Shown one piece after another: positions 25,774 to 59,100 of a DNA stretch of 64,000 nucleotides (the first letter of the stretch is position 1; each line of letters opens with the position of its first letter). The stretch comes from Aplysia californica (taxonomy: Eukaryota). The stretch covers positions 107,017-171,016 of the forward strand of contig NW_004797961.1 of NCBI RefSeq assembly GCF_000002075.1, in the 5' to 3' direction. The notes beneath the pieces were generated by a model. That model was given only the letters and a program-made list of their open reading frames with translations. It did no database searches and had not been told where the DNA came from. A program made the translations under genes and the position numbers.

Positions 25774-25873
25774 NNNNNNNNNNNNNNNNNNNNNNNNNNN
25801 NNNNNNNNNNNNNNNNNNNNNNNNNNNNNNNNNNNNNNNNNNNNNNNNNNNNNNNNNNNNNNNNNNNNNNNNN
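25774..25873. other. Assembly gap (100 N)
   Basis: Run of N. Confidence 1.
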
Positions 25874-32871: not shown

Positions 32872-35800
32872 TCAGTTGTCTGTCATTGTCATTCTGAAAT
32901 CCGCAAAACCATCAGCGACTATTGAATGCACGGCGTCGATCTGTGGAAGACAAAGGTTACAGAAAGTTGAAAGCTCAGAAAACTAAAGTAAGTAAGTAAG
33001 TTTATTCAGTGTCTATTCATTGGTTAGAGGGTGATATAGCCTGAGCCTGACTTAGTTTATAATGCTTCTATTAGCTAGGGGGAGGAGCTCTAAAAATTGG
33101 TACCAAATTTACACTCATTATGATTTGATAAATATAAAGTTTCCATATGAAAAAGTACAGGTTGTGCACTGTGCAATGGTGCAAAGGATATATTTTAAAA
33201 AGAGAACCAACAAACAAACCCCCCCCTAATAACAACAAGTAAATTTCAACATTAAAAGAAAAATNNNNNNNNNNNNNNNNNNNNNNNNNNNNNNNNNNNN
33301 NNNNNNNNNNNNNNNNNNNNNNNNNNNNNNNNNNNNNNNNNNNNNNNNNNNNNNNNNNNNNNNNNNNNNNNNNNNNNNNNNNNNNNNNNNNNNNNNNNNN
33401 NNNNNNNNNNNNNNNNNNNNNNNNNNNNNNNNNNNNNNNNNNNNNNNNNNNNNNNNNNNNNNNNNNNNNNNNNNNNNNNNNNNNNNNNNNNNNNNNNNNN
33501 NNNNNNNNNNNNNNNNNNNNNNNNNNNNNNNNNNNNNNNNNNNNNNNNNNNNNNNNNNNNNNNNNNNNNNNNNNNNNNNNNNNNNNNNNNNNNNNNNNNN
33601 NNNNNNNNNNNNNNNNNNNNNNNNNNNNNNNNNNNNNNNNNNNNNNNNNNNNNNNNNNNNNNNNNNNNNNNNNNNNNNNNNNNNNNNNNNNNNNNNNNNN
33701 NNNNNNNNNNNNNNNNNNNNNNNNNNNNNNNNNNNNNNNNNNNNNNNNNNNNNNNNNNNNNNNNNNNNNNNNNNNNNNNNNNNNNNNNNNNNNNNNNNNN
33801 NNNNNNNNNNNNNNNNNNNNNNNNNNNNNNNNNNNNNNNNNNNNNNNNNNNNNNNNNNNNNNNNNNNNNNNNNNNNNNNNNNNNNNNNNNNNNNNNNNNN
33901 NNNNNNNNNNNNNNNNNNNNNNNNNNNNNNNNTTAATAAATAAAATAATTAAGTGTGAAGGAAAAATAAGAGCTATTTGCAAAAGAAATCCTACCTCATT
34001 CAGTTGCTCCGTAAACTCTTTCTGCCACTCCTGTTTCTCTTCCTCGACTTGTCGATCGATTTCATTCGCCTCCTGTAGGACGTACGACGTTTTGTTCCCC
34101 ACTTGCTCGATGGCTGCCTTCAGACTCCTCATGTCTTCCTCTTTCTTCTCCTTGTACCTGTCCACAAAAATTAAGTATGAATACCATCCTCTAAAAGATT
34201 GAGCTGAGAGTAAATGTTTTCACCCCCCAACATAAAATGAGACCATTTGGGGCACAAGCTGCTTCCATAAAATAATTTCTACACGTGGGAATCAAACTCA
34301 CATCTTCTGCAAGCGGGGTCAATTTCAGATACTTCTCAGTATGAGTTTTACGGCACTTGCAACACTATTAGGTTATATAAGTGCCGAAAATTAGAGGTGC
34401 TACAAAAGAGTAACAAACACATAAAAGGAGTAGGAGAGATCTAGGGACGGTAGAAGTTTGATAGAAAAAAAAGGAGCAAACCACACCAGAGCACGAGCCA
34501 ATCGCCAACAATTTCAGATAGTTTGGCCAAAAAAAAACCCCTGGTAATATTAAAATGACGCCAAAAAAAACAACCCATCACCCCAGTTTTATTAGTTACC
34601 ATTGATCGGAGTTTGCTTCTAGCAACATAATTGTGTTATAAAATTTCAAAAAACATAAATTTGAGTGTGTCTTTGTTTGGGAGTGCATATATGTCAAGGT
34701 GTATCATCAGTTTTGTTGAAACAAAGCATATGTTGTTTATTTCCCCTACATTTATGGACTGTCGTTCAAGGCATGTATCAGAGTCGGTACTGAATGTGAA
34801 TTTGAGCCCAGTTCTCCTAATTTTACAGACAGAGAACATCTCCGCACAAAAAGTTTGTTGTTTTTTAAGCGATAGGGAAGGAAAGCTTGCCCAAGACAGA
34901 AAAGGACGGAGGAAATCGGTTGAGCGTGGCCTATATCCTGTCACGGGTGAAGGGCATCGACAATGACAACAACAGCAACAATCAGCTGTTCCAACTTACT
35001 GCCTGAGGTCTGTCAACTTCTGGTGCTGGTGTTGTTTGTTGATGTCGGTTTGGAGAAAGATCTGTCGCTTCTGCTCCTGTCTGACCGTCAGCTTCTCCGC
35101 CAGATCCTCCTGTTGTTTGTACAGCTGATTGTGTTTGTCTCGCAGTTCGTTACGACGTTCCATAACTTTCTGGATTTTGCTCGCAACCTCACTGAAAAAC
35201 AATTTTTTTTTCAAGTGGCATTTGAAGACTACAGGGGGGGGGGGGGGGGCACGAGAAAAAATATTGAGGACTGCTGCCTTTGTGTGTGTGTGTGTGGTGA
35301 AACACTAAAGCAATGTAATGTGAATGTGCCAGCTGTTTGTCTTGTACCATTAGCCATTGACAGTCTTCTTCATTATGAAAATACAACTGCTACGAAACAC
35401 TTGCTACAGTACCACTAGATCAGCGGAAATCCCCCCCCCAAGACCAGAGCATTTTTCTTTGCAAGATGTCCTCACTACCTGAACGTTAGTAACATCCGCA
35501 CTATTTATTGAACCATTGAAATTATAAAATGAAAATTGTCTGCTCAGTGTAAGACTGTCATACGTCTGCGAAGTCTTACTTACACTAAGCAATGGAAATG
35601 TTACTAGAGAATGGAAAATGAGATGACAAAACAGAAAATCAACCATTTTGTCTAAAAAGCAATTAAAGTTGTACTTTTCCTTGTCTAAAAAGCAATTAAA
35701 GTTGTACTTTTCCTTGTCCAAACACCCTTGGACTTCGACGCTTGTCTTCACCGCCCTCTCTGCAGCAAGTCTCTTTCCTTCCGTTTGTTCCTGGGGAGGA

Positions 35801-41800: not shown

Positions 41801-43823
41801 TCTATGTATACCTGCATGTGTGTTTTTAGTCATATACAGCCAATAAAAAAATGTCCCTCTGGGACAATAAAGTATTACCTTATCTTATAAGTGCCAAGTG
41901 CTAGATGTGGGACTAGCGAGTAAAATATAAAGAGAAGGAGGAGCAGAGATATAAGGATAACAGATTATTGGAAAGAACCCTGTAGAAAGCCATTCGGAAC
42001 CAGAACACCCACCAACCACATCATGTCAGTTTGACAATGACCACTGAAAAGACTTAGCAGACCACATCATAGTTCCCAGCTACAAGCAGCTTATCCAGAC
42101 TCCATCATTTTAGTAAAAAATAAAGATTAAAATGTAGACTATTGTTCAAGAATGTTAAACTGAATAGATACTTTCAAGAGAACTGGGTCAAAGATTGAGT
42201 AGATAAAAAACCAATGATTGACATAAACTGTTTCAACTTTTACTTGTGCGACTCCCAATATTCAACAAAAATTAACCGCATTAAGTGGCTTCTAAAACCT
42301 AAAATTAAAATAGCATAATTTTAGAAAATGAATTCACACAAACTTCTGAATTACTGTACCCTGAAGCATAGCGACATACTATGAAAAATAGGTAGATCCA
42401 TTTTTAAAGACATAAATTGTCTCTTCAACGGAATGTTGCATAAATTATAGTACCTTCAAGAAAAAAATATAACTTTTCCCAAAAAATTAATAGAATCCAG
42501 AAACATGATTTAATTAATCATAAGTCACAAAGGTGCTTGAATTATACTGACATGCAGAGCGTAAAAGCCATCTGTGCAAACCCTTCTTCGTATAGCTCAG
42601 GGTGGGTAGTTCGCATCGGAAGAGTGCGGCACAAGGACTGAAGAAGAGGAAAAAATTGGAAGAATTTCAAAAGTAAACACCAGAAAATATCCTGTATCGA
42701 TCATTACAACTGACACGTTACACTTCACTGCTTGTCAAAGACAAAAATAAGAAAGTGCTAACTTAAGACAAAAAGACTTTCACTTTTTTGCATTTACTTT
42801 AGTTTGAATAAATAAATACACCCATTCATACTGTTTTCTTTATCATCAACAAAGTCATTTTTGATTAAATATTATGTTGTAGTTTGTTAAATTTTAAAGT
42901 ATCACATCATAATATAACCCAAAGTCAAAGCAGTCTCTTGATGAAAATGTCCACCAAAAAAACAAACAAACAAAGAGCAGAATTAGAATGCTGGCCAAGC
43001 ATATAACATATATGCAGAAAATAAAGTCGAGATACCTGTGTTGCTTGCTCGATAGACCGCGAAGTCAGCCATTCAAATATTTGACCATAAATCTCTCTCC
43101 ATCTCCTCGGCTGTTCACAGTTGAAAGAAAAAAACAATATAAATATATGTCAGTTATGACCGTTACTCAAGATGCAGAGAAGAGAATAAATACTTGATCA
43201 TAATTCATAGTTTGAGTAAAAGAATCTGAATGTTTTCACTTTATTGAATATGGAGAAACAGGAAAAATCTAACCCTGACTAACGGTAGTAGGCGATTGCT
43301 GATCAGATCAGTTTGGGTTTTCTAAAGTAGAAAGGTATCAACAAATCATAAATGATATTTTCAAAACATGGTAATAAACAATATGCAAATGAAACCATAC
43401 AAAATAAACAAAAGGTTAATATTAGAAACTGAGAAACAGATGATGAAACATGTCATCTTATTTTTATGAGAGAAAAAAAAATTGCATGCTGAGGGCATAT
43501 TTGGTCATCTAACTTTCACAACTGGCTTATCAGACCATGAAGCCAACTGGTATTTAAAGAGTAAACTGAAGAGAAAATAAAACTCGTGGCACTGAGAAGT
43601 GACAACAAACAAATTAAATATAAATTAAGTACAGATTTGTATTGCATATCAAACTCCTGATAACTGACATTTTCTGCAAGACATGCAGATGTGTATTAGG
43701 TGATAAAACAAACAATTCCCTTACATCAGGTCTGCTCAAATCATTTTCATTCAGATTCACGTCAGATTCTCTGAAGGCAGCCAAAATCTCCGGGACTGGC
43801 AATAAGGGTGATTCGAAGTTCAT
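32872..43823 (-). CDS. NUF2: Kinetochore protein Nuf2 (NDC80 complex), 12 coding exons, 445 aa
   Basis: Exons 43823-43725, 43110-43036, 42637-42552, 41420-41359, 40776-40679, 39512-39402, 37781-37662, 36278-36099, 35790-35708, 35191-35000, 34157-33995, 32940-32872; phases consistent (1338 nt). Nuf2 CH-domain motifs CGFESFSVEDVIAP and RSSRILSAFINF; KIIHSPERYK matches the Nuf2 IVxSPE motif; long coiled coil. An extra exon in the 33265-33932 gap is not needed but cannot be excluded. Confidence 0.9.
33265..33932. other. Assembly gap (668 N) in the last NUF2 intron
   Basis: Run of N. Confidence 1.
35648..35719. repeat. 33-bp tandem duplication spanning the NUF2 exon 9 donor
   Basis: TTGTCTAAAAAGCAATTAAAGTTGTACTTTTCC x2 plus TTGTC. 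Confidence 0.92.
38398..38646 (-). mobile_element. MITE family E, inverted copy
   Basis: Reverse complement of 21172-21413 with both TIRs. Confidence 0.85.
39061..39945 (-). mobile_element. Cluster of three family A copies around NUF2 exon 6
   Basis: Copies ~39061-39275, 39537-39714 (TSD ACA(A/G)ACAATTTA) and ~39765-39945. Confidence 0.85.
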
Positions 43824-46657: not shown

Positions 46658-49600
46658 ATGCTGGCCCAGATTTGTCAGTTTCTTGCTGTTGACTCAAGCT
46701 ATTTTCCTCAAAATGAGCATATAATCATTGGTGATAGGTCTAATGAAGGTTGCTTCTTGGTACATTATTTCCTTAACTTGTGTGAGAAACAAAACAGACC
46801 AGTGTGCGTGATCGGATTATCTCAATCTTTCCATCATTACAACACGGTTGCCCACAAGCTTGGGACCAACCTACTTTCAGCTTGCGATGAGAACAAAAAC
46901 CTTCATTTTATTGAAGGCCTAAAATTACTTGGTGGTTGTTTTGACGTTGTTTCGACTGATTCTGATATCTCCAAACCATTTCTAGAGTTTGTTAATGGTA
47001 TTAGCACCCCACTTTTGCAATATATCCAATCGTCAGTTGATAAGTTAACCCAAATTGAGTGCCCTGTGGATAATGTCCATGGTCCTGTAGTAATTGTTGA
47101 TGATTTATCTGTGCTTTTGACTGCTGGAGCCTCAGCTAAGGACATAATACTGCTCCTGAATGGGCTACGCCGCATAGTTTCATCTCAGAAAGTGAAGGGC
47201 TCGTTAATTACATTCTCAAGTCTTGAAAAAGAGGATGAGGAAATCGAGGAAGTCTGGGCATACATGTCACACATCAGTACTCTGAAAATTGAAGTTTCAG
47301 CTTTGAGCTCAGGTTTCTGCAAAGACGTACATGGTCAGGTGAGTTTATTGTGGGTGGGTTGATTGATAGGCCTACTATCCATTTTCCCAATGTTGGATAT
47401 GTTGACTAGATAGGTCGTTTGGTTCTTAATTCATAATTATAAAGTGTAGTGGCAGCCTGGTGGTGGATTTTCTTGGTTTGGGCAGCTAAAATTGAGGTCT
47501 GCTAACCAAGTAAGATTACTGGGTTGGTTTTGAGCTTGTCTATAATCTATCATGTATGTCTATGATTGAGAATTAGAAAAGTTTGACCATTGATTGCGTA
47601 TAATGTGCTCTTTTGATCCAACAGCATAAAGCCTTTATGTATGCAGATGTTTTCCTGTTTCAAAGTTTGGTCGTCGTGAAATGAAACATTTTGGACCAGC
47701 CAGGTATTGTTGTTTGCAGGACCAGTGTCACAGTGTGGGCCTCCTGTCCAATCCAGTGTCCATTCCTATTGAGATGCTGTGATCTTTCACAGTGGTTATA
47801 CTGTGGGGTAAAAATAGGCCTGCTTATCGACATGGCCACCTCTATTCTCACCCGGGGTGAGAATAGTGCAGGCGAGTCTTTTGGCTATTCTCACCCGGTG
47901 CGCGTTCACCGTTATAGCCTAGATCTATTCTAGGCCAACAAATTTTGCGTTCACCCTAAACCACAGAATTCTACACTGTGATAACACAAAAATTGTAGAA
48001 TTCTGTGCTGTGAACAAACGTTCCATTACAACTGTACTTGTAGCCTACTAAAAGCGTACAATTTTGTCTGTGGGCAGTGGAGAGAGTGAGAGAGAGAAAG
48101 AGAGAACAAAACAAAATGGCGACCCGCGTAGTTCGGCTCGATTCGAAAAGTTAAATAGCCGTAGCATCTTTGTAGACAACCAAATTAATTTACTTTTGTG
48201 TTTTAACATCATTTTTTAACTTTGTTTTGGTCAATTTGATCGTCCACACCGATAGACAGTATTCAGACAGAGAGAGAGAAGAGGGGAGGAGTAGATCTTG
48301 CGAGAACTTCCGGGCGGGTGAGAATAGCCACTTTCATGAGGTTTCTATCGACATCGTTGTCACGACACTGTTGGCCTCATTTTGCATTTCTGACCACACA
48401 GCAATTCTTGTCTCTTTTTGAGTCATGTTTTTGAATTCCAGTCATTTCGTCACACCGGTGCAGTCAAGACATCACAGTCATCTCGTCACACCACAAATCC
48501 ACAAGGTTGGATGGAGACAATCATTTCGTAACACAATTGCGAACATCAAACGCGCATTGTCATGTCAATCGCAAATCACGATTTTTGGGGAGGGTTGGGG
48601 GGCTGTGTGTGGAAGGACGGGTGGGGGGCTGTGCGAGTCGTTGTGCCTACCTAATTAGCTACACGGTTCATTAATATGTAGGTTTATTGACAATATCGAG
48701 TCAAATCAACAAAGATTTTAAGTATTATTGATGAAAGGTGTGATTGCCAAGATCATAATATTAGTTCTGTTAAAAATAAATTAGCTATTTAAATGTATGG
48801 TACTGCAATTTTGCTAAAAGCTAGACCCTTACTTTCAAACAAAGCCTTACTTACTTTTTACCAGGCATTGTTTTTGCCTTATTTAAACTATTATTTAGCT
48901 ATGGAACAGTTTGGACGAAGATTTAATTTACATTAATAATTTATTTAACTTCCAAAAAAGCTTTAAGCTAATCCTTGAAAACTCTACTAGCATATATAAC
49001 AATTTTAGAGAGATAGCCTAAGGGAAGTCATTTCATCACACATATTATTTCGGGTGTGACGAAATGACTGGTTACCATGTTTTTCACTTGACTGCTGAAT
49101 GCTGTAATGGTGCTGAAGCATTAGTTTGTCACTTACACAGATGCGCTTAGGAAAGAAAAACGTTTATCTGCTAGTTAAAACTGTCTTGAAAAGAAAGCAA
49201 CACAATTTAGTTGTTTTTTTAAATAGTGGGGTCGAGCAGAAATAAGCACTGGTAATTTTTACGAATAACAGTTACAGAATAAATTATAAGCTCAATGTCT
49301 GGGGAATTGTATCCTAAAAATTATAAGAATCAGCCCTGTCTTTGTACAAAACATAGAGGGATATATTTCCGGTAACTAAATCATAACACTGGTTAGTCTA
49401 TATTCCTATTTGCTCTGTAGTGGCTGGATATTTTCACGAGACCTAGATTGCCATCTTTTTTAGTTTTAATCTGGATTCGTTTCTATGCCTTGAATCCTGA
49501 ATTCGGCATATGATTTTTTAATTACATTTCATTTGGTTTTAGGGCAAACTTTTACTTTGCTTAAAATTTGTTTGTTTTTAACATCTCATGTTTCAAGAAT

Positions 49601-51563: not shown

Positions 51564-52505
51564 AAAAAGAAGAAAAACAACAACCCCAAAGCCTCTGGCA
51601 TTTCTCAACAGTTTTTACACACTTCTGTCTTAATTGAACACAAAGTAAAGCCTGGAAAATCTAACACGTCCCTCTTTTTAGAAAGCACCTGAAATGACCT
51701 AACCCTGAAGCATTCGCTGCTATCATGTGTTTAAAGATGAAGCAGCTTTGTGTCAGAAAAGGAAATTATAGATCTGTCATTAGTCGCAAACAGATTGGAA
51801 CATGAGTCCTCTCAATTTCGGTACGATTTATACCACCAGCAAACTGCCATATTTGAGACTGACTTACTATCTTTCATATATGTGTTGAAGTGGTGGTCAA
51901 AAATAGCGTTTGATGGGATGGAGTAGTGTGATCATTTGTTTGTTTCAGATTGAGCGCAGTGAATTTGGGCATTGTTTGGGATTTCACAGGCTACAGTCAT
52001 GAAAGCTTGATTCGAGGCCTCTTTTTTTCTCTCTCTCTCTCATGTCTTTACTTCAAACAATTCATGTCAATGACATTTTTACACAGAGACGTAAGTCTTG
52101 TTATAAAAACCTTTAGACTTCTTACTGTGAAAAAGAGAGAAAAGGTGTATGAATAGTTTTTGTTTTTAGTATTTATATTTTTTAATGAAAGGAAATAGTA
52201 CTTACACTTTCTGTCAATTACCAGGACTCAGAGCTTACAAGGAGTCTTTGATTCTAAGATACAGAAGTTTAGACCTCCATGTGGGTTAAAATCTCAAACT
52301 CTTTTAGGCCTATTGTATACCCACTAAATCAGTCTGCCAACAATTTTGGTTCTAAATTGGCCATTTCTTTATTTTGCAGATGAAAATTGAATGGCAAGAT
52401 AGCTGCACAAAACCAAGGAAGTCCAACTCAAAGCACACCCAGTTTAAGCTGTCTGACAAAAGTGTTGATCTCTTCGCTTCTGGTATGTCCGCTGCTGTGC
52501 TCTAA
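46658..52505 (+). CDS. ELP6: Elongator complex protein 6, 2 exons, 268 aa
   Basis: Exon 1 46658-47338 (QSFHHYNTVAHKLGTNL, FIEGLK, VVIVDDLSVL, LSSGFCKDVHGQ|GT). Exon 2 52380-52505 (ttgcag|MKIEW...QFKLSDKSVDLFASGMSAAVL*), matching the conserved ELP6 C-terminus. Phase 0 intron. Confidence 0.93.
47838..48330. mobile_element. Inverted-repeat element (MITE-like)
   Basis: CTATTCTCACCCG at ~47840 and ~47885; inverted GGGTGAGAATAG at ~47855 and ~48316. Confidence 0.5.
48438..49071. mobile_element. Inverted-repeat element, possibly Helentron/DINE-like
   Basis: Exact 19-bp IR CCAGTCATTTCGTCACACC / GGTGTGACGAAATGACTGG; extra partial copies at ~48475 and ~49026, the latter forming a terminal hairpin. 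Confidence 0.65.
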
Positions 52506-52808
52506 AGCAGCACTGTGATTGTTTTGGAGGAACGGACAGACTTTTTGAATTAACGCCACAACTTTGGATTCTGGCATCATAGAGAAAGAAAAAACCTGCG
52601 TCGTTTTTGTTGAACGGTAAATCCACTTCTCTCTACTGATCTCGTGTTCTGAAGTGACTGTAACCTCACTGGTCGCACCTATTTATGCACGTAGCGTCTC
52701 AGGCATGTTTTGGAAGCCACCAGGCGAATCAATTAAACTCTGCTTTGTCTTGCACATCAATCAGCGTAGTCGTTGTTGTGCGGGTAAGTAGGTTTGGATA
52801 GAAGCACC

Positions 52809-55800
52809 ATGTCATCGTCGTCTCCCTGGGACGCGTACTCGCAGCACACAGGGCTCACCTCCTCCCTGGAGCCCTATGCTCACCCTTTCTCCACCGACAT
52901 GCGAAACCTGGCCGGAGGGACTGGAGCTCCTGGCATGAGCAGCCTGACAGGGGAGAGCATGCTCGGGTACCCCAAGTCCAGCGATTTGTCGGCTGCCGCA
53001 AATCTGAATCTGGCGTCTCCGTACGGTGCGTATGGGCAGTCGTATCCTGGGATGCCAGATCTAGGGTTCCCGGGCGCCTCCCTGAGGCCCAGCTCGGCGA
53101 CTCACTCGCCCGTTGCTGCGGCAGCGGAAAACCTCCCAGCATCCTCCCCTCACGGACAGTATTCCGGCACACCCACCTCGGAGACCCAGTCGTCGTCTCC
53201 CGCCTTCTCCAACTCGACGTCTCTGTACACCCCGAGCACCATCTCCAGCAGCATTGCCTCCAGCCCCTACGCCCAGGCCTTTGGGAGCAGCAGCAGCTCT
53301 GCCGCCGAATCGGGTTCGAGGGGCCCGCACTTTTCGCCGTTCGCCCAGTCCTACGGGTACCCGATGTACGGCTACAACCAGGTGGGCGGTTTCCCGACTG
53401 CCAACTCTCTGGACGGGGTCAACCGCTACATGAGCGGCATCTCCTCGTCCCAGCTGATGCAATCCTCGGCCATGGGCCTCTACTCCAACAGCCAGGCGGG
53501 CCAGATGCCGTTCGCCTACCACCCCTCCATGGGGTGGAGCCCCAGTGCTATCCCAGGGTTCCAGTTGAAGGAGGGAGCAGATCTCATGTCGCCGGAAGAG
53601 CTGGAGCGCTACCGCTACCGCCAGCTGTCCAACCCGTACTTCCCGGGCCTGCCGCCCGGGGGCCCGCCCGGACGGAACTTTCCCCCCCACCCCTTACAGC
53701 AGGGTATGATGAGGAGCGGCCCGTTCCTGGACGACCGCGTGCACAGCCCTGCTCCAAAGAAACCCAAGAAATCCACAGAGGAGGCGGAACGGCCCCCGAC
53801 GCCAGCCCCAAGGGATCCCGCGTCGTTTCACTCGCAGAGAGGTATCTACTTGTTCACATCCAACTCCGAGCCGGGAAACCCCAAGTTTTATGGTGACAGA
53901 TACGTTCTTTACGAGAAAGATTTGTGTGAAAAGCTGTCTCGTGTTAGCCTTCCGGGGAAAATCCAGTATGTTTACAATCCTCTTGAGTATGCATTTGAAT
54001 CCCATTTAAAGTTTGTGCGCCGGTTTTGCACTGGGGAGAAATACATATTGTTTGTTGGGATGAATCCAGGACCTTTTGGTATGTCTCAAAATGGTGTACC
54101 GTTTGGAGAATGTCAAATTGTGAAAGAGTGGTTGCAGATTGATGGGGAAGTATTGAAGCCTGTATTGGAGCACCCGAAGCGACGTGTCGTCGGGCTGGAT
54201 TGTTCTCGGTCCGAGGTCACCGGGGGGCGGTTCTGGCAACTGTTCCGAACTCTTTGTCACACTCCAGAACATTTCTTCAGGACAAGCTATGTGCACAATC
54301 TATGTCCTTTTGCCTTTTTAACGGACACTGGTAAAAACGTCACCCCTCCTCAGTTAACGTCGTCTGTTTTAGACCAGATCAACGCGTTGTGTAACGCCAC
54401 TCTGGTCGAAGTTGTCCGGCTACTAAAATGCAAGTACGTCATATGCATTGGGAAGTATGCCCTGGCCCAGGCTCAGAAAGCATTATCTGCCGACGAATTC
54501 AGTGGCATCACCTTGGAATGTTTGATGCACCCCAGCCCCATCAACCCTGCTGCGAACAAGGGCTGGGCGGATATAGCCATCAAACAGTTAACGGAAATAG
54601 GTATCATTGAAATCATTCAGTACGGAAGGGTGCCCTACCAGCCTCAGAGCCAGCCTCCCCCTTCCTTGTCTCACCCACCTCACGCCTCTTCCTCATCCTC
54701 CATGAGTCACCATCCGCATCACCACCACCCTTACCACAACAAGCAATCTCCGGGTCACTACGGATTTCAGTCACCTCCCGTTCAGTCATATCACCACTCG
54801 CCAGCTCAAGGGTCCAACAACAACCACCACGGCCAGTCTCCGGCGCACGCTTCCGGCCTGAGTCAGTCCCCGGCTCACGCCCCGTCTGCGCGGAACCAGT
54901 CATCGCCTGCCCACGCCTCGTCCCGCGCTCAGTCATCCCCGGCACATTCATCCTGTAGTCAGTCTCCGGCCCAGCCCCAGCAGAACCAGGTGGCGGCCGC
55001 CAACCAGTCCCCCAGTCAGACCACAGGTAGCGGCAGCAGCAGCAGCACCCTTCCAGGACAGCCGTCCTCAGAGCAACTGCAGGACGGGCAAAAACTTTTG
55101 AACAAAGACAATGGGGAGAAGGGGGGCTCGCAGGACTCCTCTCTAGACTCGTCTGCCGCGGCCGCAGAGAAGACTCAGGAGGGCAAGGGCTTGCCCCAGC
55201 TGAACACAAACGGCATTCCAGCATATTCAGGGGATTCACAAGGTCATGAAAACGGGTTGCAGAACCCTCACAGCGAGCCCGGCTCGCAGGGATCGGAGGT
55301 GTCCAAGGGCAACTCTCCCAGTATACAGTATCCTTCCGCAGGAAATCCACAAGTGAACGCAACAGACTCTCAGCTGCAAAACCCCCAGATGAGCTCTGCG
55401 AACCCCCAGATGACCAGCAGTAGCCAGATGAACACGACAAATCCGCAGATGCACATGCCCCTGGGCTCGGGCCACCCCCACATGGGCATCGGCATGTCCA
55501 TGTCGGACTCGCCAAACCTCCAGCAAGGCGCTCCGGTGGACCAGCACGCCAGCCTGACCAACCAGCAGATCGGCTCGCCGCAGATGAGCAGCCAGAACTC
55601 GCACCTGGGTGTGTCCCAGAACTCGCACCTGGGCTCCATGAACTCCCACATGGCCTCCTCCATGGGGGCGCACATGGGCATGGGCTCGCAGATGGGGATG
55701 GGCGTCGGGGTGCCGATGGGCCGGGACCAGGGGATGAGCCTCCACGGCCAGATGGGCTCCATCAACCCCTACAGCCAGCAGCAGCTGGACATGTCCCAGA

Positions 55801-56156
55801 TGAGCGGCAGTTACGGCGCCGGCCCCAACAGCATGTCCCTCAACAGCTACTCGGGCATGCGGCCCAGCAGCTCGGAGATGCCGGGCTACGCGGCCTCCCA
55901 CATGGGCCTGCAGAACCCGTCGGCCATGGGCATGGCCTCGATGAGCAGCATGCACTCGTCGGCCGGCGGTGGTGGGCCCATGTCCGCGCAGCAGCTGGGC
56001 ATGTTCAACCCGCACATGAGCCGCATGATGGGCCCGCCGGAGCAGCAGATGGGCATGCACGCCGGCCTCAGCTCCATGTACGACAGCGGCCAGCTGGGCA
56101 AGGAGATACCGCCCTACGGAGGCCACTACACCGATAAGCCGCCCGAGTGCAGTTAG
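52809..56156 (+). CDS. SMUG1: SMUG1-family uracil-DNA glycosylase with very long low-complexity N- and C-terminal arms; intronless, 1115 aa
   Basis: First ATG at 52809 (gcaccATG) with an in-frame TAA upstream at 52785. UDG family-3 core ~53900-54625: YVYNPLEYA, FVGMNPGPFGMSQNGVPFG, SEVTGGRFW, YVHNLCP, MHPSPINPAANKGW. The frame is uninterrupted for 3.3 kb with strong C/G-ending codon bias. Confidence 0.93.
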   Translation: MSSSSPWDAYSQHTGLTSSLEPYAHPFSTDMRNLAGGTGAPGMSSLTGESMLGYPKSSDLSAAANLNLASPYGAYGQSYPGMPDLGFPGASLRPSSATHSPVAAAAENLPASSPHGQYSGTPTSETQSSSPAFSNSTSLYTPSTISSSIASSPYAQAFGSSSSSAAESGSRGPHFSPFAQSYGYPMYGYNQVGGFPTANSLDGVNRYMSGISSSQLMQSSAMGLYSNSQAGQMPFAYHPSMGWSPSAIPGFQLKEGADLMSPEELERYRYRQLSNPYFPGLPPGGPPGRNFPPHPLQQGMMRSGPFLDDRVHSPAPKKPKKSTEEAERPPTPAPRDPASFHSQRGIYLFTSNSEPGNPKFYGDRYVLYEKDLCEKLSRVSLPGKIQYVYNPLEYAFESHLKFVRRFCTGEKYILFVGMNPGPFGMSQNGVPFGECQIVKEWLQIDGEVLKPVLEHPKRRVVGLDCSRSEVTGGRFWQLFRTLCHTPEHFFRTSYVHNLCPFAFLTDTGKNVTPPQLTSSVLDQINALCNATLVEVVRLLKCKYVICIGKYALAQAQKALSADEFSGITLECLMHPSPINPAANKGWADIAIKQLTEIGIIEIIQYGRVPYQPQSQPPPSLSHPPHASSSSSMSHHPHHHHPYHNKQSPGHYGFQSPPVQSYHHSPAQGSNNNHHGQSPAHASGLSQSPAHAPSARNQSSPAHASSRAQSSPAHSSCSQSPAQPQQNQVAAANQSPSQTTGSGSSSSTLPGQPSSEQLQDGQKLLNKDNGEKGGSQDSSLDSSAAAAEKTQEGKGLPQLNTNGIPAYSGDSQGHENGLQNPHSEPGSQGSEVSKGNSPSIQYPSAGNPQVNATDSQLQNPQMSSANPQMTSSSQMNTTNPQMHMPLGSGHPHMGIGMSMSDSPNLQQGAPVDQHASLTNQQIGSPQMSSQNSHLGVSQNSHLGSMNSHMASSMGAHMGMGSQMGMGVGVPMGRDQGMSLHGQMGSINPYSQQQLDMSQMSGSYGAGPNSMSLNSYSGMRPSSSEMPGYAASHMGLQNPSAMGMASMSSMHSSAGGGGPMSAQQLGMFNPHMSRMMGPPEQQMGMHAGLSSMYDSGQLGKEIPPYGGHYTDKPPECS

Positions 56157-59100
56157 TCGCGGCTGGTGGTGGTGGTGGTGGTAGGAGGTGTGACGCCGCG
56201 CAACCTAGTGGGGTTTGTTTTGTTTTTCTTTTCTTTCTCTTTAAAAAATTTTTTTTTTAGAAAGAGTTTTGTTGGCTTGGGGACATGCATGTTATTCATA
56301 TTTGGTTGCTTGTTTGTATTGTTATGAATTGTTGTGTTTTGGGGTCTTTTCTTTATTTTTTCTTTCTTTTTTTTTTTTTTCTTTCTTTGTTTTGTTTTTG
56401 TTCAAAGTTCCATGATTTAGTGTCAGAAGGTTCAGGAAGTGAAGAATCCATGTGACAGATCAGAAAATTCCTCGCACACATCACTTTCATCTCATGATTT
56501 TATTTTAACCTTAGTTGTCTCTGGTCCACTGATATTTTTGTCGCATTGTTTTATCTTCGAAAAGGATGTCATCTTTCTCTTTGTATGAAAATGTTTTTAG
56601 ACCCATTTACCTTGATGGGGGTCCTTATTTTATTTTTAGGGACGATAAGTATCATCATCTGAAGGTAATGCTTTAACTTTTATGTCATTTGTATATATTG
56701 TAAAATGTATAGTCAGTATAGTTATTGATGGTAAGATGTATTTTTATAGAATTATCTACGTATTGGTCTCATGAAAGAAATATTTTGTAATGTGTAGATA
56801 ACATATTCCTACAATTTGTTTCATGAAGCAATGCTTAATATACCTTGTCAACAAAGTGTACTGAGTGTAAGTGTATGCGTACACTTATTATATATTATGT
56901 GAGAGGGAGTGTTTGATTATGATGTCTTGACGTTGTTGTTGAATGGTTCGACGTTGGTTGTTTGGAATATATATTATATATATATATACAATACTTTGGT
57001 TGTCTCTTGCTATGTTCCTGTTTGTTTGAATGCCTGTCCTTTCAAGACTGCAGAGCAGAATTAGTTTCTGTACCCCTAAACGCTGGACCAGAAGCATCAC
57101 TGCATCTTCACTGGACACGACGTTCAGATTCAAAATCTTCGTGTTTACACACCAACCAAACTCAGTCTTCCGCTACTAATTTACTAGGGATGATGTGTGT
57201 GTGTGTGTTTTTATCTAGGTTCTGTTCCAACGTCCTCCGCACAGACACCCCCAGTTGTCTGCTCCCTCTCCAACAATGTCTTTTTTGTATATTTTGTACC
57301 TGGTTGTTCATTCGTTGTTTCAGAACTTTTTTTTGACAAGGGTATTGTTTGCTGAAGAGTGTATGTTGTACTTGCAGAGCGGCAGTGATGTGGCAGAATT
57401 GTGCGTGTGAGAGAGAAGAGGATACAGCACACTAAAATGAGGACAAAAGTTGGAAAAATATATCACTCTGGTCAGAGTGCGGGATATTTTTAGCACATTT
57501 TTAAAATTTGATTTATTTGGGGTAAGGGAGGGGAGGGGGGTGCTTTGCTGATTTTTGAGTCTGAAATATGTTGAAACAGTCTTTTAAAAGATTTTTCTGG
57601 TATTTCTATGCGGCACTCTTTTATGAAACCCTCTTTTTTTTTTCATCTTAAAGTTAATGGTTAAACCAATCTTTTTGTCGTGCACAGGATTTCCTATTTT
57701 CAGTCTACGGCAAAATACCTTGTAACGGACATGAATCGTTACTTATATTACTCCTCTTCCTTTGCTGCTGCGATCTTGCAGTTCATTTATAAATTAGGAT
57801 ATTATATATAAAAGTTGTTCAAATTATTTGTTTTATTTGGCTAAAAATATTGCTGTTATCGCTGTCAATGCAAGTTGTGAGATTTTTATGATTGAGAGAA
57901 ATGAATGGTCATGACTGCGTGTGAGTAGAGATCTCTCCACATGTTGCAACGGCAGCGGGAATCACAAAGATTTTTAAGCCTGACAAATTCTTTATATGAA
58001 CAGAAAGATATTGATTTTTTTGTTGTGCACAAATGGAAGTGACAGTGCTATATTGGGGGCATTTTACATTTTATTCAAGAAAGTTCAGCTCTAGTCCACG
58101 CTTTCTTCAAAACCTACTTTTCTTTGTTTGTTTGGGTTTTTTTGTTTGTTTGTTGCTGTTTTTTTGCTTTTTTAATCCCATGCTTTACTGTATGACACCA
58201 TTTTTGTCTTATGTTTTCCTTTCTTTTTCATGATTGTCTTCCTGGCTGGTCCGCTCTTCTAAACTACCGTTACAACCACATAATGTAATTTGCAAATTTA
58301 CATGCTAGTGAAAGTTTTTGCCACTGATGTAGATTTGTCAGGTTCGGTTTGGTGAGAGTTTGATGGCCCGGTTACACGTAACGATAAATTGTGTCAAATT
58401 CGTCGTGTGCGAAAACTATCCGTTTTATCGACTGTGTAGTCTGTTTAGACGTTCGGATCTGTCGTCCAGTTTTCTTTTGATCAGGGAGATTCCTAGTAAT
58501 TGACTTGGCTGCAGATGTGCAACGCACCGGGTGACCTTGATACACAACTTCACCATTGATGATCAACTGAATAATAAAAATGGTAAATTGTACATAATTA
58601 CGCATCAAATCAGGTTCCTGGAGAGCAACCTTACTTAGTTTGAGACGCTGTTTCCGAATATGAAATCAGTTTTACCTGCGATAAATATTTTTAAATTTTG
58701 AGCCCTAAGTTAATCCAGCGCAGCGGCAAATTTCCAAGTGATTCTACATCACAGCGTGTCTCCCCCAAAACTGACAGTGATCGCACGGAAAATATCTAGC
58801 AGCGCTTGATTTCTCAACCGAGTCTTCAAGCCATCGTCCAAGCTTTGTACAATTTTGTGCTTACACCTGATGATTTGTCTCATGATCGATAGATCATCCA
58901 GTTTTTGTACAATTTATTGTTGCGTGTAACCGGGGCTTTACTGCGCTCGTAAGTTAACTGCATAAGGTCATATATGAGGGGGCATGGTAGATTTGTCAGT
59001 CTGCAAATCTTTTCCAATATTTAAATTTCTTTAGCGGCAACAGTTTCATTTGAATTCGGAGTGTAGCTTTCCTTGCATTCCTTTTTTAAAATAGGGTAGG

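Follow-up and report, generated by a model that had tools for sequence, protein, structure and literature searches.

The UDG-superfamily members TDG and UNG2 combine an alpha/beta catalytic core with disordered tails that serve localization and partner binding, and a 2022 review contrasted them in this respect with SMUG1, which it described as 'compact' (PMC9266487). Vertebrate SMUG1 is about 270 residues long and works in nucleoli and Cajal bodies together with DKC1 (dyskerin) (PMC7922111). SMUG1 substrates include oxidation products. Among the best 120 short SMUG1s, the medians are 282 residues for the total length, 38.5 residues for the N-terminal extension and 1 residue for the C-terminal extension.

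Here, we describe a SMUG1 locus of a different build in Aplysia californica. The analysis covers a window of 64,000 nucleotides (contig NW_004797961.1, positions 107,017 to 171,016); all coordinates refer to this window and all features lie on the + strand. An earlier note, made from the letters of the window, had described the locus as a giant intronless SMUG1 with transcription-factor-like arms and had proposed that it could act as a chromatin or RNA-granule regulator rather than a plain repair enzyme.

Results

In the ORF listing of the window a single ORF spans 52794-56156, with the first ATG at 52809, and 5' extension of the frame is blocked by a stop codon immediately upstream of 52794. 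The complete coding sequence of the long SMUG1 (52809..56156; ORF list, homology and alignment) is one unbroken frame, i.e. a single exon of 1115 codons plus the stop, as had been noted before with respect to both length and lack of introns. The frame is also open and single-exon in 7/7 further heterobranch loci that were read: in Biomphalaria the gene span equals 3 x aa + 3, both Candidula copies are unbroken single-exon frames, and the Lymnaea locus is open over 1075 residues, through the N-arm. Chance is excluded by the codon-for-codon conservation of this 3.3-kb open frame in seven other heterobranch loci, and these comparisons indicate that Aplysia SMUG1 is a genuine single-exon protein of 1115 residues, in which an intact catalytic core is placed between two long arms. 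An exact-protein look-up with the 1115-residue sequence gave no match.

The SMUG1 catalytic domain comprises residues 363-605 (53895..54623), as delimited by Pfam, PDB phmmer, residue comparison, structure model and Foldseek, in line with the core of ~240 residues recognized earlier. In the phmmer search of the PDB, residues 363-603 align over their full extent, against chain residues 6-245, with Xenopus SMUG1 (1oe4, E=1.1e-75) and human SMUG1 (9ggs, E=3e-72). The sole Pfam match, UDG (PF03167), is above its cut-off. An AF2 model of residues 255-612 has a mean pLDDT of 84, with a pLDDT >90 in the core, and in Foldseek this model matches Xenopus and human SMUG1 with a target-normalised TM of 0.96 and an rmsd of 1.0-1.2 A, with SMUG2, UNG and UdgX scoring far below SMUG1. 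A full-length AF2 run built on 8 near-identical sequences gave a mean pLDDT of 32 with the core itself unfolded, and was used only for the lone helix in the arms.

All four core motifs listed in the earlier note were located: GMNPGPFGM (residues 417-425; 54057..54083), GVPFG (residues 429-433), VHNLCP (residues 495-500) and HPSP (residues 574-577). In the alignment, motif 1 with the C5-substituent recognition loop (G87-M91 in human SMUG1) contains the catalytic Asn N419, corresponding to human N85 and invariant in 145/145 sequences compared, and F423 and M425 are likewise identical to human. Motif 2 and the DNA-penetrating loop, HPSPINPAANK (54528..54560), contain the catalytic His H574 (human H239), and H574, S576 and N579 of the HPSPxN pattern are retained, as are the base-stacking Phe (F432; human F98) and the uracil-specificity Asn (N497; human N163). 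Altogether, the equivalents of human N85, M91, F98, N163, H239, S241, N244, N248 and K249 are identical. The human DNA-contact arginines are not kept: R187 is replaced by Leu and the wedge R243 by Ile (I578), the latter in all heterobranchs. The wedge residue is Ile in 28/115 and Ala in 10/115 non-lophotrochozoan SMUG1s and, given this variation, is not family-defining; in human SMUG1 the R243A substitution lowers kcat/Km 7-fold (PMC13230825). Sequence and model together show a complete SMUG1 fold of UDG family 3 in the core, with all catalytic and base-recognition residues intact. Separately, we observed that the N163 equivalent is Ser in land-snail copy A only, and not in Aplysia.

The N-arm (residues 1-362; 52809..53894), as defined by composition, searches, alignment and model, is a low-complexity region rich in Ser (18%), Pro (13%), Gly (10%), Ala (9%) and Tyr (6%), with no predicted fold and with a heterobranch-specific sequence. 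Within it, the conserved motif EELERYRYRQLSN (residues 262-274; 53592..53630; alignment and AF2 models) forms the sole helix predicted in the arms, at moderate confidence. The NLS-like basic patch PKKPKK (residues 316-321; 53754..53771; alignment and motif scan), which lies exactly where it had been reported, is the only match to K[KR]x[KR] in the protein, and a basic patch is present at the equivalent place before the core in other lophotrochozoan long SMUG1s. Residues 335-362 (53811..53894), including FHSQRGIYLF, are predicted from the alignment and the AF2 model to be ordered and to pack against the core as an N-terminal cap (pLDDT block means of about 84-98). Conservation in the N-arm depends strongly on residue type: shared by seven or more of the 8 sequences are 19/21 Tyr, 14/15 Phe, 2/2 Trp (35/38 for the three combined) and 13/13 Arg, as opposed to 7/33 Ala and 39/66 Ser.

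The C-arm, 510 residues long, has the H/Q/S/P-rich and then M/G-rich composition anticipated in the earlier note. Its first part (residues 606-880; 54624..55448; composition, alignment and search) is rich in Ser, Gln, Pro and His and contains a His run and SP-rich repeats, among them a cluster of SPAHA/SPAQ repeats (residues 676-722; 54834..54974; alignment and composition) that is kept across heterobranchs and provides candidate proline-directed phosphorylation sites. The second part (residues 881-1115; 55449..56153; composition and alignment) is rich in Met, Gly, Ser and His. These last 235 residues contain 14% Met (34 Met) and 16% Gly; Met makes up 14-19% in 8/8 orthologues aligned, and 16/34 Met positions are conserved compared with 28% of positions overall. 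The alignment ends in the conserved C-terminal motif HYxDKPPECS (residues 1106-1115; 56124..56153). Parts of the C-arm align poorly, and only 28-32% of positions in it agree in seven or more of the 8 sequences.

Across their entire length, eight full-length orthologues share 67-79% identity, all orthologues aligned share the start MSSSSPWDAYSQH and the end DKPPECS, and discrete motifs are conserved in the arms (SPWDAYSQH, QSYGYPMYGYN, ELERYRYRQ and HYxDKPPECS). Synonymous divergence between species is saturated (pS 0.59-1.0), and dN, one pair of paralogues and neighbouring genes were used as yardsticks in place of dN/dS. Between species dN is 0.09-0.23 for the N-arm, 0.04-0.09 for the core and 0.26-0.49 for the C-arm, and the pair of paralogues from Candidula gives omega values of 0.09, 0.06 and 0.19 in the same order. 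The N-arm is 86% identical to that of Biomphalaria, whereas exon 1 of the neighbouring ELP6 reaches 58%. These data indicate that both arms are coding sequence under purifying selection across Heterobranchia and, because aromatic, Arg and Met positions are also conserved, that the arms are functional and not junk; the check on arm conservation that the earlier note had called for (ORF length, introns and dN/dS) found them open, single-exon and constrained in heterobranch orthologues. The fraction of charged residues in the arms is 0.06-0.12, and composition, absence of predicted structure and a low-confidence stretch of the model (residues 275-317) suggest that the arms are disordered.

When the N-arm was searched by phmmer against 1.8 billion representatives, only heterobranch SMUG1 was matched; the C-arm search likewise matched only heterobranch SMUG1, and Atlas searches gave no match for either arm. 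The arms are therefore lineage-specific low-complexity regions without relatives outside these SMUG1s, and of the description as transcription-factor-like only the composition stands, since neither transcription factors nor other protein families proved homologous to them. The 927-Mb assembly contains one SMUG1 locus, which answers the question of a second, short SMUG1 in the negative. A search of the genome with Pfam PF03167 returned no match and missed the long SMUG1 locus itself, so that it is uninformative on UNG and TDG. Whether such long forms were already annotated had been left open: equally long SMUG1s are present in public annotation for Biomphalaria, Physella, Elysia and Candidula, mostly unnamed, and the literature searched contained no characterization of them.

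The gene directly upstream is ELP6, the first coding exon of which (46658..47338; BLAST and sequence reading) comprises 227 codons followed by the donor GTGAGT and the last of which (52380..52505; BLAST and alignment) comprises 41 codons plus TAA and ends 303 nt before the SMUG1 ATG. The 303-nt spacer (52506..52808; alignment) contains one ATTAAA at 52732 and is not conserved between distant species. A GGTAAGT at 52785, 25 nt 5' of the ATG, was considered as a donor serving as a conserved switch and was rejected, being absent from the other four species aligned. The SMUG1 stretch is contained in 18 runs from 5 studies, and 75-85% of its sampled words are found in runs among them that comprise no more than 42-53 million letters. 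Shotgun sequencing of genomic DNA could not yield this with a 927-Mb genome, and we infer that the stretch is transcribed. Logan contigs L002 and L011 were rejected as evidence for a cDNA or bicistronic mRNA: they contain the full ORF and the last exon of ELP6 with unalignable intron-like sequence 5' of it and are probably genomic.

Long N-arms are widespread in Lophotrochozoa. In caenogastropods, Patella, bivalves, Owenia and nemerteans the cores of long SMUG1s are orthologous to that of Aplysia, with a tree that follows the species tree, and are preceded by a basic patch as in Aplysia; their N-arms, of 223-1169 residues and mostly encoded by a giant first exon, cannot be aligned with the Aplysia N-arm. 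They have introns inside the core and no ELP6 neighbour (e.g. Babylonia, Pecten and Owenia), whereas the Aplysia gene is a single exon behind ELP6, and a C-arm is absent or reaches only 160-224 residues in caenogastropods compared with 510 in Aplysia. Heterobranchs are set apart by the long C-arm, by intron loss, by the location of the gene about 300 nt downstream of ELP6 and by a core tree with a burst followed by stasis (stem 0.41 and crown branches 0-0.07 vs a median tip of 0.33). The gene shows the features expected of a retrogene or intron-loss copy that replaced its parent, being intronless where outgroups have introns, lying in a new neighbourhood and having left no parental copy. Any poly(A) or target-site traces would by now probably have disappeared; alternatively, introns may have been lost stepwise.

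Discussion

Aplysia SMUG1 shares with human and Xenopus SMUG1 the fold (TM 0.96 at an rmsd of about 1.1 A, with 45-48% of structurally aligned residues identical), the catalytic Asn and His, the stacking Phe, the specificity Asn and the GPFGM loop, and differs from them in the addition of a 362-residue N-arm and a 510-residue C-arm, in Ile instead of Arg at the wedge, in Leu at R187 and in its single-exon coding sequence. With a core of 243/1115 residues the protein is not compact. The layout of a core plus disordered tails is common to TDG and UNG2, and the analogy to TDG drawn in the earlier note is apt as far as architecture is concerned; yet TDG, for which binding to transcription factors, CBP/p300 or SUMO is documented, belongs to family 2 (MUG/TDG) and UNG2 to family 1 with no sequence similarity to this family 3 protein, their tails are about 100 residues compared with arms of 360-510 residues, and the Aplysia arms resemble no other protein, which places it outside the TDG-type co-regulators. 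With its S/G/Y/Q/P-rich composition and conserved aromatic and Arg positions the N-arm is reminiscent of prion-like/FET-type domains, and the Met/Gly/Ser-rich C-arm of Pbp1-type domains, without homology in either case. The Aplysia arms have a proline content above that of FET proteins. Pbp1 is discussed in the literature as having a Met-rich low-complexity domain, and the domain of yeast Pbp1/ataxin-2 is reportedly a reversible oxidation sensor.

Combining these data, we consider it fairly probable that the locus encodes the snail's sole SMUG1, made as the full-length 1115-residue protein and active as a glycosylase, with arms that set its location and its partners. In this model, the enzyme would still excise U and oxidized uracils, and the arms, as functional disordered modules, would determine its site of action and its partners: the basic PKKPKK patch would give nuclear import, about 25 SP/TP sites would permit control by phosphorylation, and conserved 'stickers' (Tyr/Phe/Trp/Arg in the N-arm and Met/Tyr/His in the C-arm) would allow the protein to bind partners multivalently or to partition into nuclear bodies. 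On the heterobranch stem the gene would have lost its introns, acquired its long C-arm and come to lie immediately downstream of ELP6, and the burst of change in the core followed by near-stasis would be consistent with recruitment into new, tightly constrained interactions.

The earlier proposal goes further in suggesting that the protein is chiefly a chromatin or transcription co-regulator, or an RNA-granule scaffold, in the manner of TDG, with its glycosylase chemistry secondary. In its favor the arms account for 78% of the protein and are strongly constrained, the whole surface of the core is almost frozen in heterobranchs after the stem burst, suggesting many protein contacts, and TDG is a precedent for a long-tailed co-regulator in the UDG superfamily (PMC9266487). 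The arms, however, lack homology to any activation domain or regulator, and because every catalytic residue is intact in the only SMUG1 of the genome, a duty in repair or RNA quality control could not be passed to a paralogue and the ordinary SMUG1 job would have to be carried as well; we therefore find this reading, in which the protein is not a plain repair enzyme, improbable. We assign the same low likelihood to arms in which only length and composition are selected, acting as entropic spacers or as determinants of solubility or half-life without specific partners. Such arms could explain why the C-arm keeps a constant Met content of 14-19% with only 28-32% of its positions conserved and why other lophotrochozoan classes have long N-arms that cannot be aligned with this one, but not the position-specific conservation of Tyr, Phe, Trp and Arg, the discrete motifs or an N-arm dN almost as low as that of the core.

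By analogy, the Met-rich terminal 235 residues could be a reversible oxidation sensor that tunes the self-association or localization of an enzyme removing oxidized pyrimidines. The 34 Met, their constancy in 8/8 orthologues, the preferential conservation of 16/34 Met positions and the oxidation products among SMUG1 substrates would fit this idea, which we nevertheless regard as quite improbable, as it is by analogy only and Met-rich regions also act as plain hydrophobic stickers. We see very little chance that the arms belong to UTRs or are removed by splicing to leave a product of ~270 residues. The GGTAAGT upstream of the ATG and one public Lymnaea model of 718 residues without an N-arm point in this direction; however, both arms are under codon-level purifying selection, start and end are conserved in all orthologues, the GGTAAGT is missing in the other four species aligned, the open Lymnaea frame shows the 718-residue model to be merely truncated, and 75-96% of the words of the stretch, 58% of which is arm sequence, are present in small runs. 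More speculatively, and with a low but somewhat better likelihood than these alternatives, the full-length glycosylase that we favor may have been rebuilt on the heterobranch stem into a scaffold-type enzyme, in which an aromatic/Arg N-arm and a redox-sensitive Met-rich C-arm bring it into a nuclear condensate or large complex and the frozen core surface serves a new interaction network, possibly with co-expression of the upstream Elongator subunit ELP6. If so, the location or activity of a glycosylase would be switched by oxidative stress via its own low-complexity domain.

The finding is comparative and descriptive, and the enzyme family and its chemistry are already well known. It identifies a large animal clade in which the tails of SMUG1 far exceed those of TDG and UNG2, contradicting the picture of a compact, tail-less SMUG1 (PMC9266487), and in heterobranchs these tails change at a slower pace than a folded housekeeping protein encoded next to them (N-arm vs ELP6) although they resemble nothing known. 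It thereby opens three questions to direct testing: how a base-excision enzyme is steered by disordered regions, whether the role of SMUG1 in nuclear bodies and RNA quality control is ancient, and how 'sticker' residues of disordered regions persist over deep time.

The ORF and its catalytic core

A single ORF occupies 52794-56156 on the forward strand with a stop codon directly 5' of it, and the first ATG, at 52809, gives a protein of 1115 aa in which the UDG superfamily domain is the sole Pfam match; the GC content of the region is 52-58% versus 35-40% in the flanks. The coordinates, motifs and arm lengths that the earlier note had read from the DNA were all correct, as was the basic PKKPKK at 53754-53771. 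In PDB sequence searches, residues 363-603 align end to end with SMUG1 of Xenopus (E=1.1e-75), human (E=3e-72) and Geobacter. Gap-free rows of the human alignment place human N85, F98, N163, H239 and R243 at N419, F432, N497, H574 and I578 of the Aplysia protein. Across 145 aligned SMUG1 cores, Aplysia has identical residues at the positions of N85, M91, F98, H239, S241, N248 and K249 and retains R124; R215 is replaced by Lys, which half of all SMUG1s have there, R187 by Leu and the duplex-penetrating R243 by Ile. In human SMUG1 the R243A substitution lowers kcat/Km 7-fold (PMC13230825). Because 28 of 115 non-lophotrochozoan SMUG1s also have Ile here, the Aplysia change falls within the variation of the family.

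A structure model of residues 255-612, built from a 95-sequence alignment, has a mean pLDDT of 84, exceeds 90 in the core and superimposes on Xenopus and human SMUG1 with a target-normalised TM of 0.96 and an rmsd of 1.0-1.2 Å. In this model residues ~335-362, including FHSQRGIYLF, are predicted to form an ordered cap packed on the core, EELERYRYRQ (262-274) is a moderate-confidence helix, and residues 275-317 have pLDDT <50. Judged by its residues and predicted fold, the core is an intact SMUG1 enzyme. The second, short SMUG1 for which the earlier note had left room is not present in the 927-Mb assembly, which contains one SMUG1 locus only.

The arms as selected protein sequence

In a search limited to long proteins, Physella, Biomphalaria, Elysia, Candidula (two copies) and two further transcriptome or genome assemblies yielded full-length relatives (1035-1071 aa). 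Eight of these proteins align over their entire length with 67-79% identity and have a common start, MSSSSPWDAYSQH, and a common end, HYxDKPPECS. In Lymnaea stagnalis the genomic frame (L012:6930-10157) is open for 1075 aa, and its N-arm is 83% identical to that of Aplysia; the arms are open in orthologues, as the reading of the earlier note required. Public models cut this one frame into 76, 246 and 718 aa, which is an annotation error, and the 718-aa model was rejected as a short isoform given the open genomic frame.

Between species, dN is 0.09-0.23 in the N-arm (residues 1-362), 0.04-0.09 in the core (363-605) and 0.26-0.49 in the C-arm (606-1115), with synonymous sites saturated (pS 0.71-1.0). 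Omega was taken from the two Candidula paralogues, the only pair with usable dS in all three regions, and is 0.09, 0.06 and 0.19, respectively. Aplysia and Biomphalaria are 86% identical in the N-arm and 63% in the C-arm; local yardsticks for the same species pair are 58% for the folded neighbour ELP6 and 38-56% for Nuf2 fragments. Conservation of the arms is position-specific: when identity in 7 or more of the 8 species is required, the N-arm keeps 19/21 Tyr, 14/15 Phe, 2/2 Trp and 13/13 Arg, compared with 7/33 Ala and 39/66 Ser. The last 235 residues are 14-19% Met in each species, and conservation there is highest for Met, Tyr and His. Both arms are almost uncharged (charged-residue fraction 0.06-0.12) and together contain 25 SP/TP sites with a conserved SPAHA/SPAQ cluster. 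Sequence comparison thus identifies both arms as real protein sequence under selection.

A phmmer search of 1.8 billion cluster representatives with the N-arm gave no matches outside heterobranch SMUG1, the C-arm search gave heterobranch SMUG1 and no other family, and Atlas searches with both arms gave no matches. These searches trace neither arm to any known protein and, therefore, the label transcription-factor-like in the earlier note holds for their composition and not for their ancestry.

Distribution of long SMUG1 proteins

The best 120 short SMUG1s have a median length of 282 aa, and their median N- and C-terminal extensions are 38.5 and 1 aa. Long N-arms are found throughout Lophotrochozoa (other gastropods, 223-484 aa; bivalves, 382-1169 aa; the annelid Owenia, 425 aa; nemerteans, 345-404 aa) and are unalignable between classes except for a basic patch; the RGIY-F cap can also be aligned among gastropods. 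Heterobranchs (435-510 aa) and caenogastropods (160-224 aa) are the only groups with a C-arm >150 aa. In venerid clams SMUG1 is 1414-1442 aa long, and ~1150 aa of this is an N-arm with no sequence relationship to that of the snail. Two possibly chimeric models were also seen, a 1535-aa goby model in which a kinase is fused to SMUG1 and a 673-aa protein with PF04734 beside the UDG domain.

The single-exon CDS and the ELP6 neighbourhood

The core tree agrees with the species phylogeny (gastropods 99/94, caenogastropods plus heterobranchs 98/96, heterobranchs 100/100). With a heterobranch stem of 0.41, crown branches of 0-0.07 and a median tip of 0.33, the history of the heterobranch core is a burst followed by near-stasis.

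The intronless CDS reported earlier is likewise a single exon in Biomphalaria, Lymnaea and Candidula copy A; SMUG1 of Pecten, Owenia and Babylonia has introns within the core and no adjoining ELP6. In Aplysia ELP6, an Elongator subunit gene, has two coding exons (46658-47338 and 52380-52505, forward strand, 268 aa), and its stop lies 303 nt upstream of the ATG of SMUG1, which is on the same strand, the distance being 215 nt in Biomphalaria and 229 nt in Candidula copy A, with Nuf2 farther upstream in all three. The Nuf2 fragments of the window lie at 43030-43820 on the minus strand, matching the gene order of Biomphalaria and Candidula. ELP6 is also upstream of SMUG1 in Lymnaea, and the tandem is kept in two further heterobranchs. 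Both SMUG1 copies of Candidula unifasciata are full-length and single-exon. Upstream of copy B only a decayed remnant of ELP6 exon 1 is left (2532-2708 of its locus, L007) and, therefore, duplication of a segment or of the whole genome gave rise to this copy. At the position of the uracil-specificity Asn (human N163), copy A and a related land snail have Ser and copy B has Asn. The overall pattern fits retroposition or cDNA recombination in the heterobranch ancestor with subsequent loss of the parent gene; alternatively, the introns may have been lost stepwise.

Transcription and composition

The spacer between ELP6 and SMUG1 (52506-52808, forward strand, 303 nt) contains a single ATTAAA at 52732, and conservation of the spacer between distant species was not found. 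A consensus-like 5' splice donor, GGTAAGT at 52785 (within 52781-52790), lies 25 nt upstream of the SMUG1 ATG; it is absent from the other four species aligned and is probably a chance occurrence. It is possible that ELP6 and SMUG1 are in a shared or overlapping transcription unit.

The 4.5-kb stretch 52300-56800, of which arm sequence makes up 58%, is present in 18 sequencing runs from 5 studies, three of which contain 95-96% of its sampled words. Because runs of just 42-53 million letters contain 75-85% of these words, beyond what shotgun DNA of a 927-Mb genome would give, we infer that the arms are present in RNA.

The arm-coding DNA (52809-53894 and 54624-56153) has a GC3 of 0.78-0.80 in Aplysia only; the core has 0.52, ELP6 0.39 and the flanks a GC of 0.35, and in six other heterobranch loci the GC3 of the arms is 0.32-0.53. 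The arms remain conserved as protein despite a strong shift at synonymous sites in Aplysia. On the minus strand the C-arm coding region also contains antisense ORFs of 296-300 aa (54613-56126), which are taken to result from its high GC content and scarcity of stops. Runs of N at 25774-25873 and 33265-33932 are assembly gaps or masked sequence.

Interpretation

Long SMUG1 proteins are already in public databases under automatic names, and no paper in the literature searched links SMUG1 to molluscs or to long tails. That the long SMUG1 is a co-regulator, as the earlier note proposed, is a less likely reading, the architecture being the one point in its favour. By likeness to yeast Pbp1, whose Met-rich domain is discussed in the literature and is a redox-switch precedent, the Met-rich C-arm might be a redox switch. 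The best-supported reading from sequence is that of a predicted-active, sole-copy SMUG1 in which the arms would be functional disordered modules. In a 2022 review SMUG1 is described as compact and mostly deuterostome (PMC9266487), whereas the Aplysia protein of 1115 aa has long arms on both sides of its core. These arms would serve nuclear import and regulation, together with either multivalent binding or targeting to compartments. Vertebrate SMUG1 binds dyskerin and is found in nucleoli and Cajal bodies (PMC7922111), so that a targeting role for the arms would be only a modest extrapolation.
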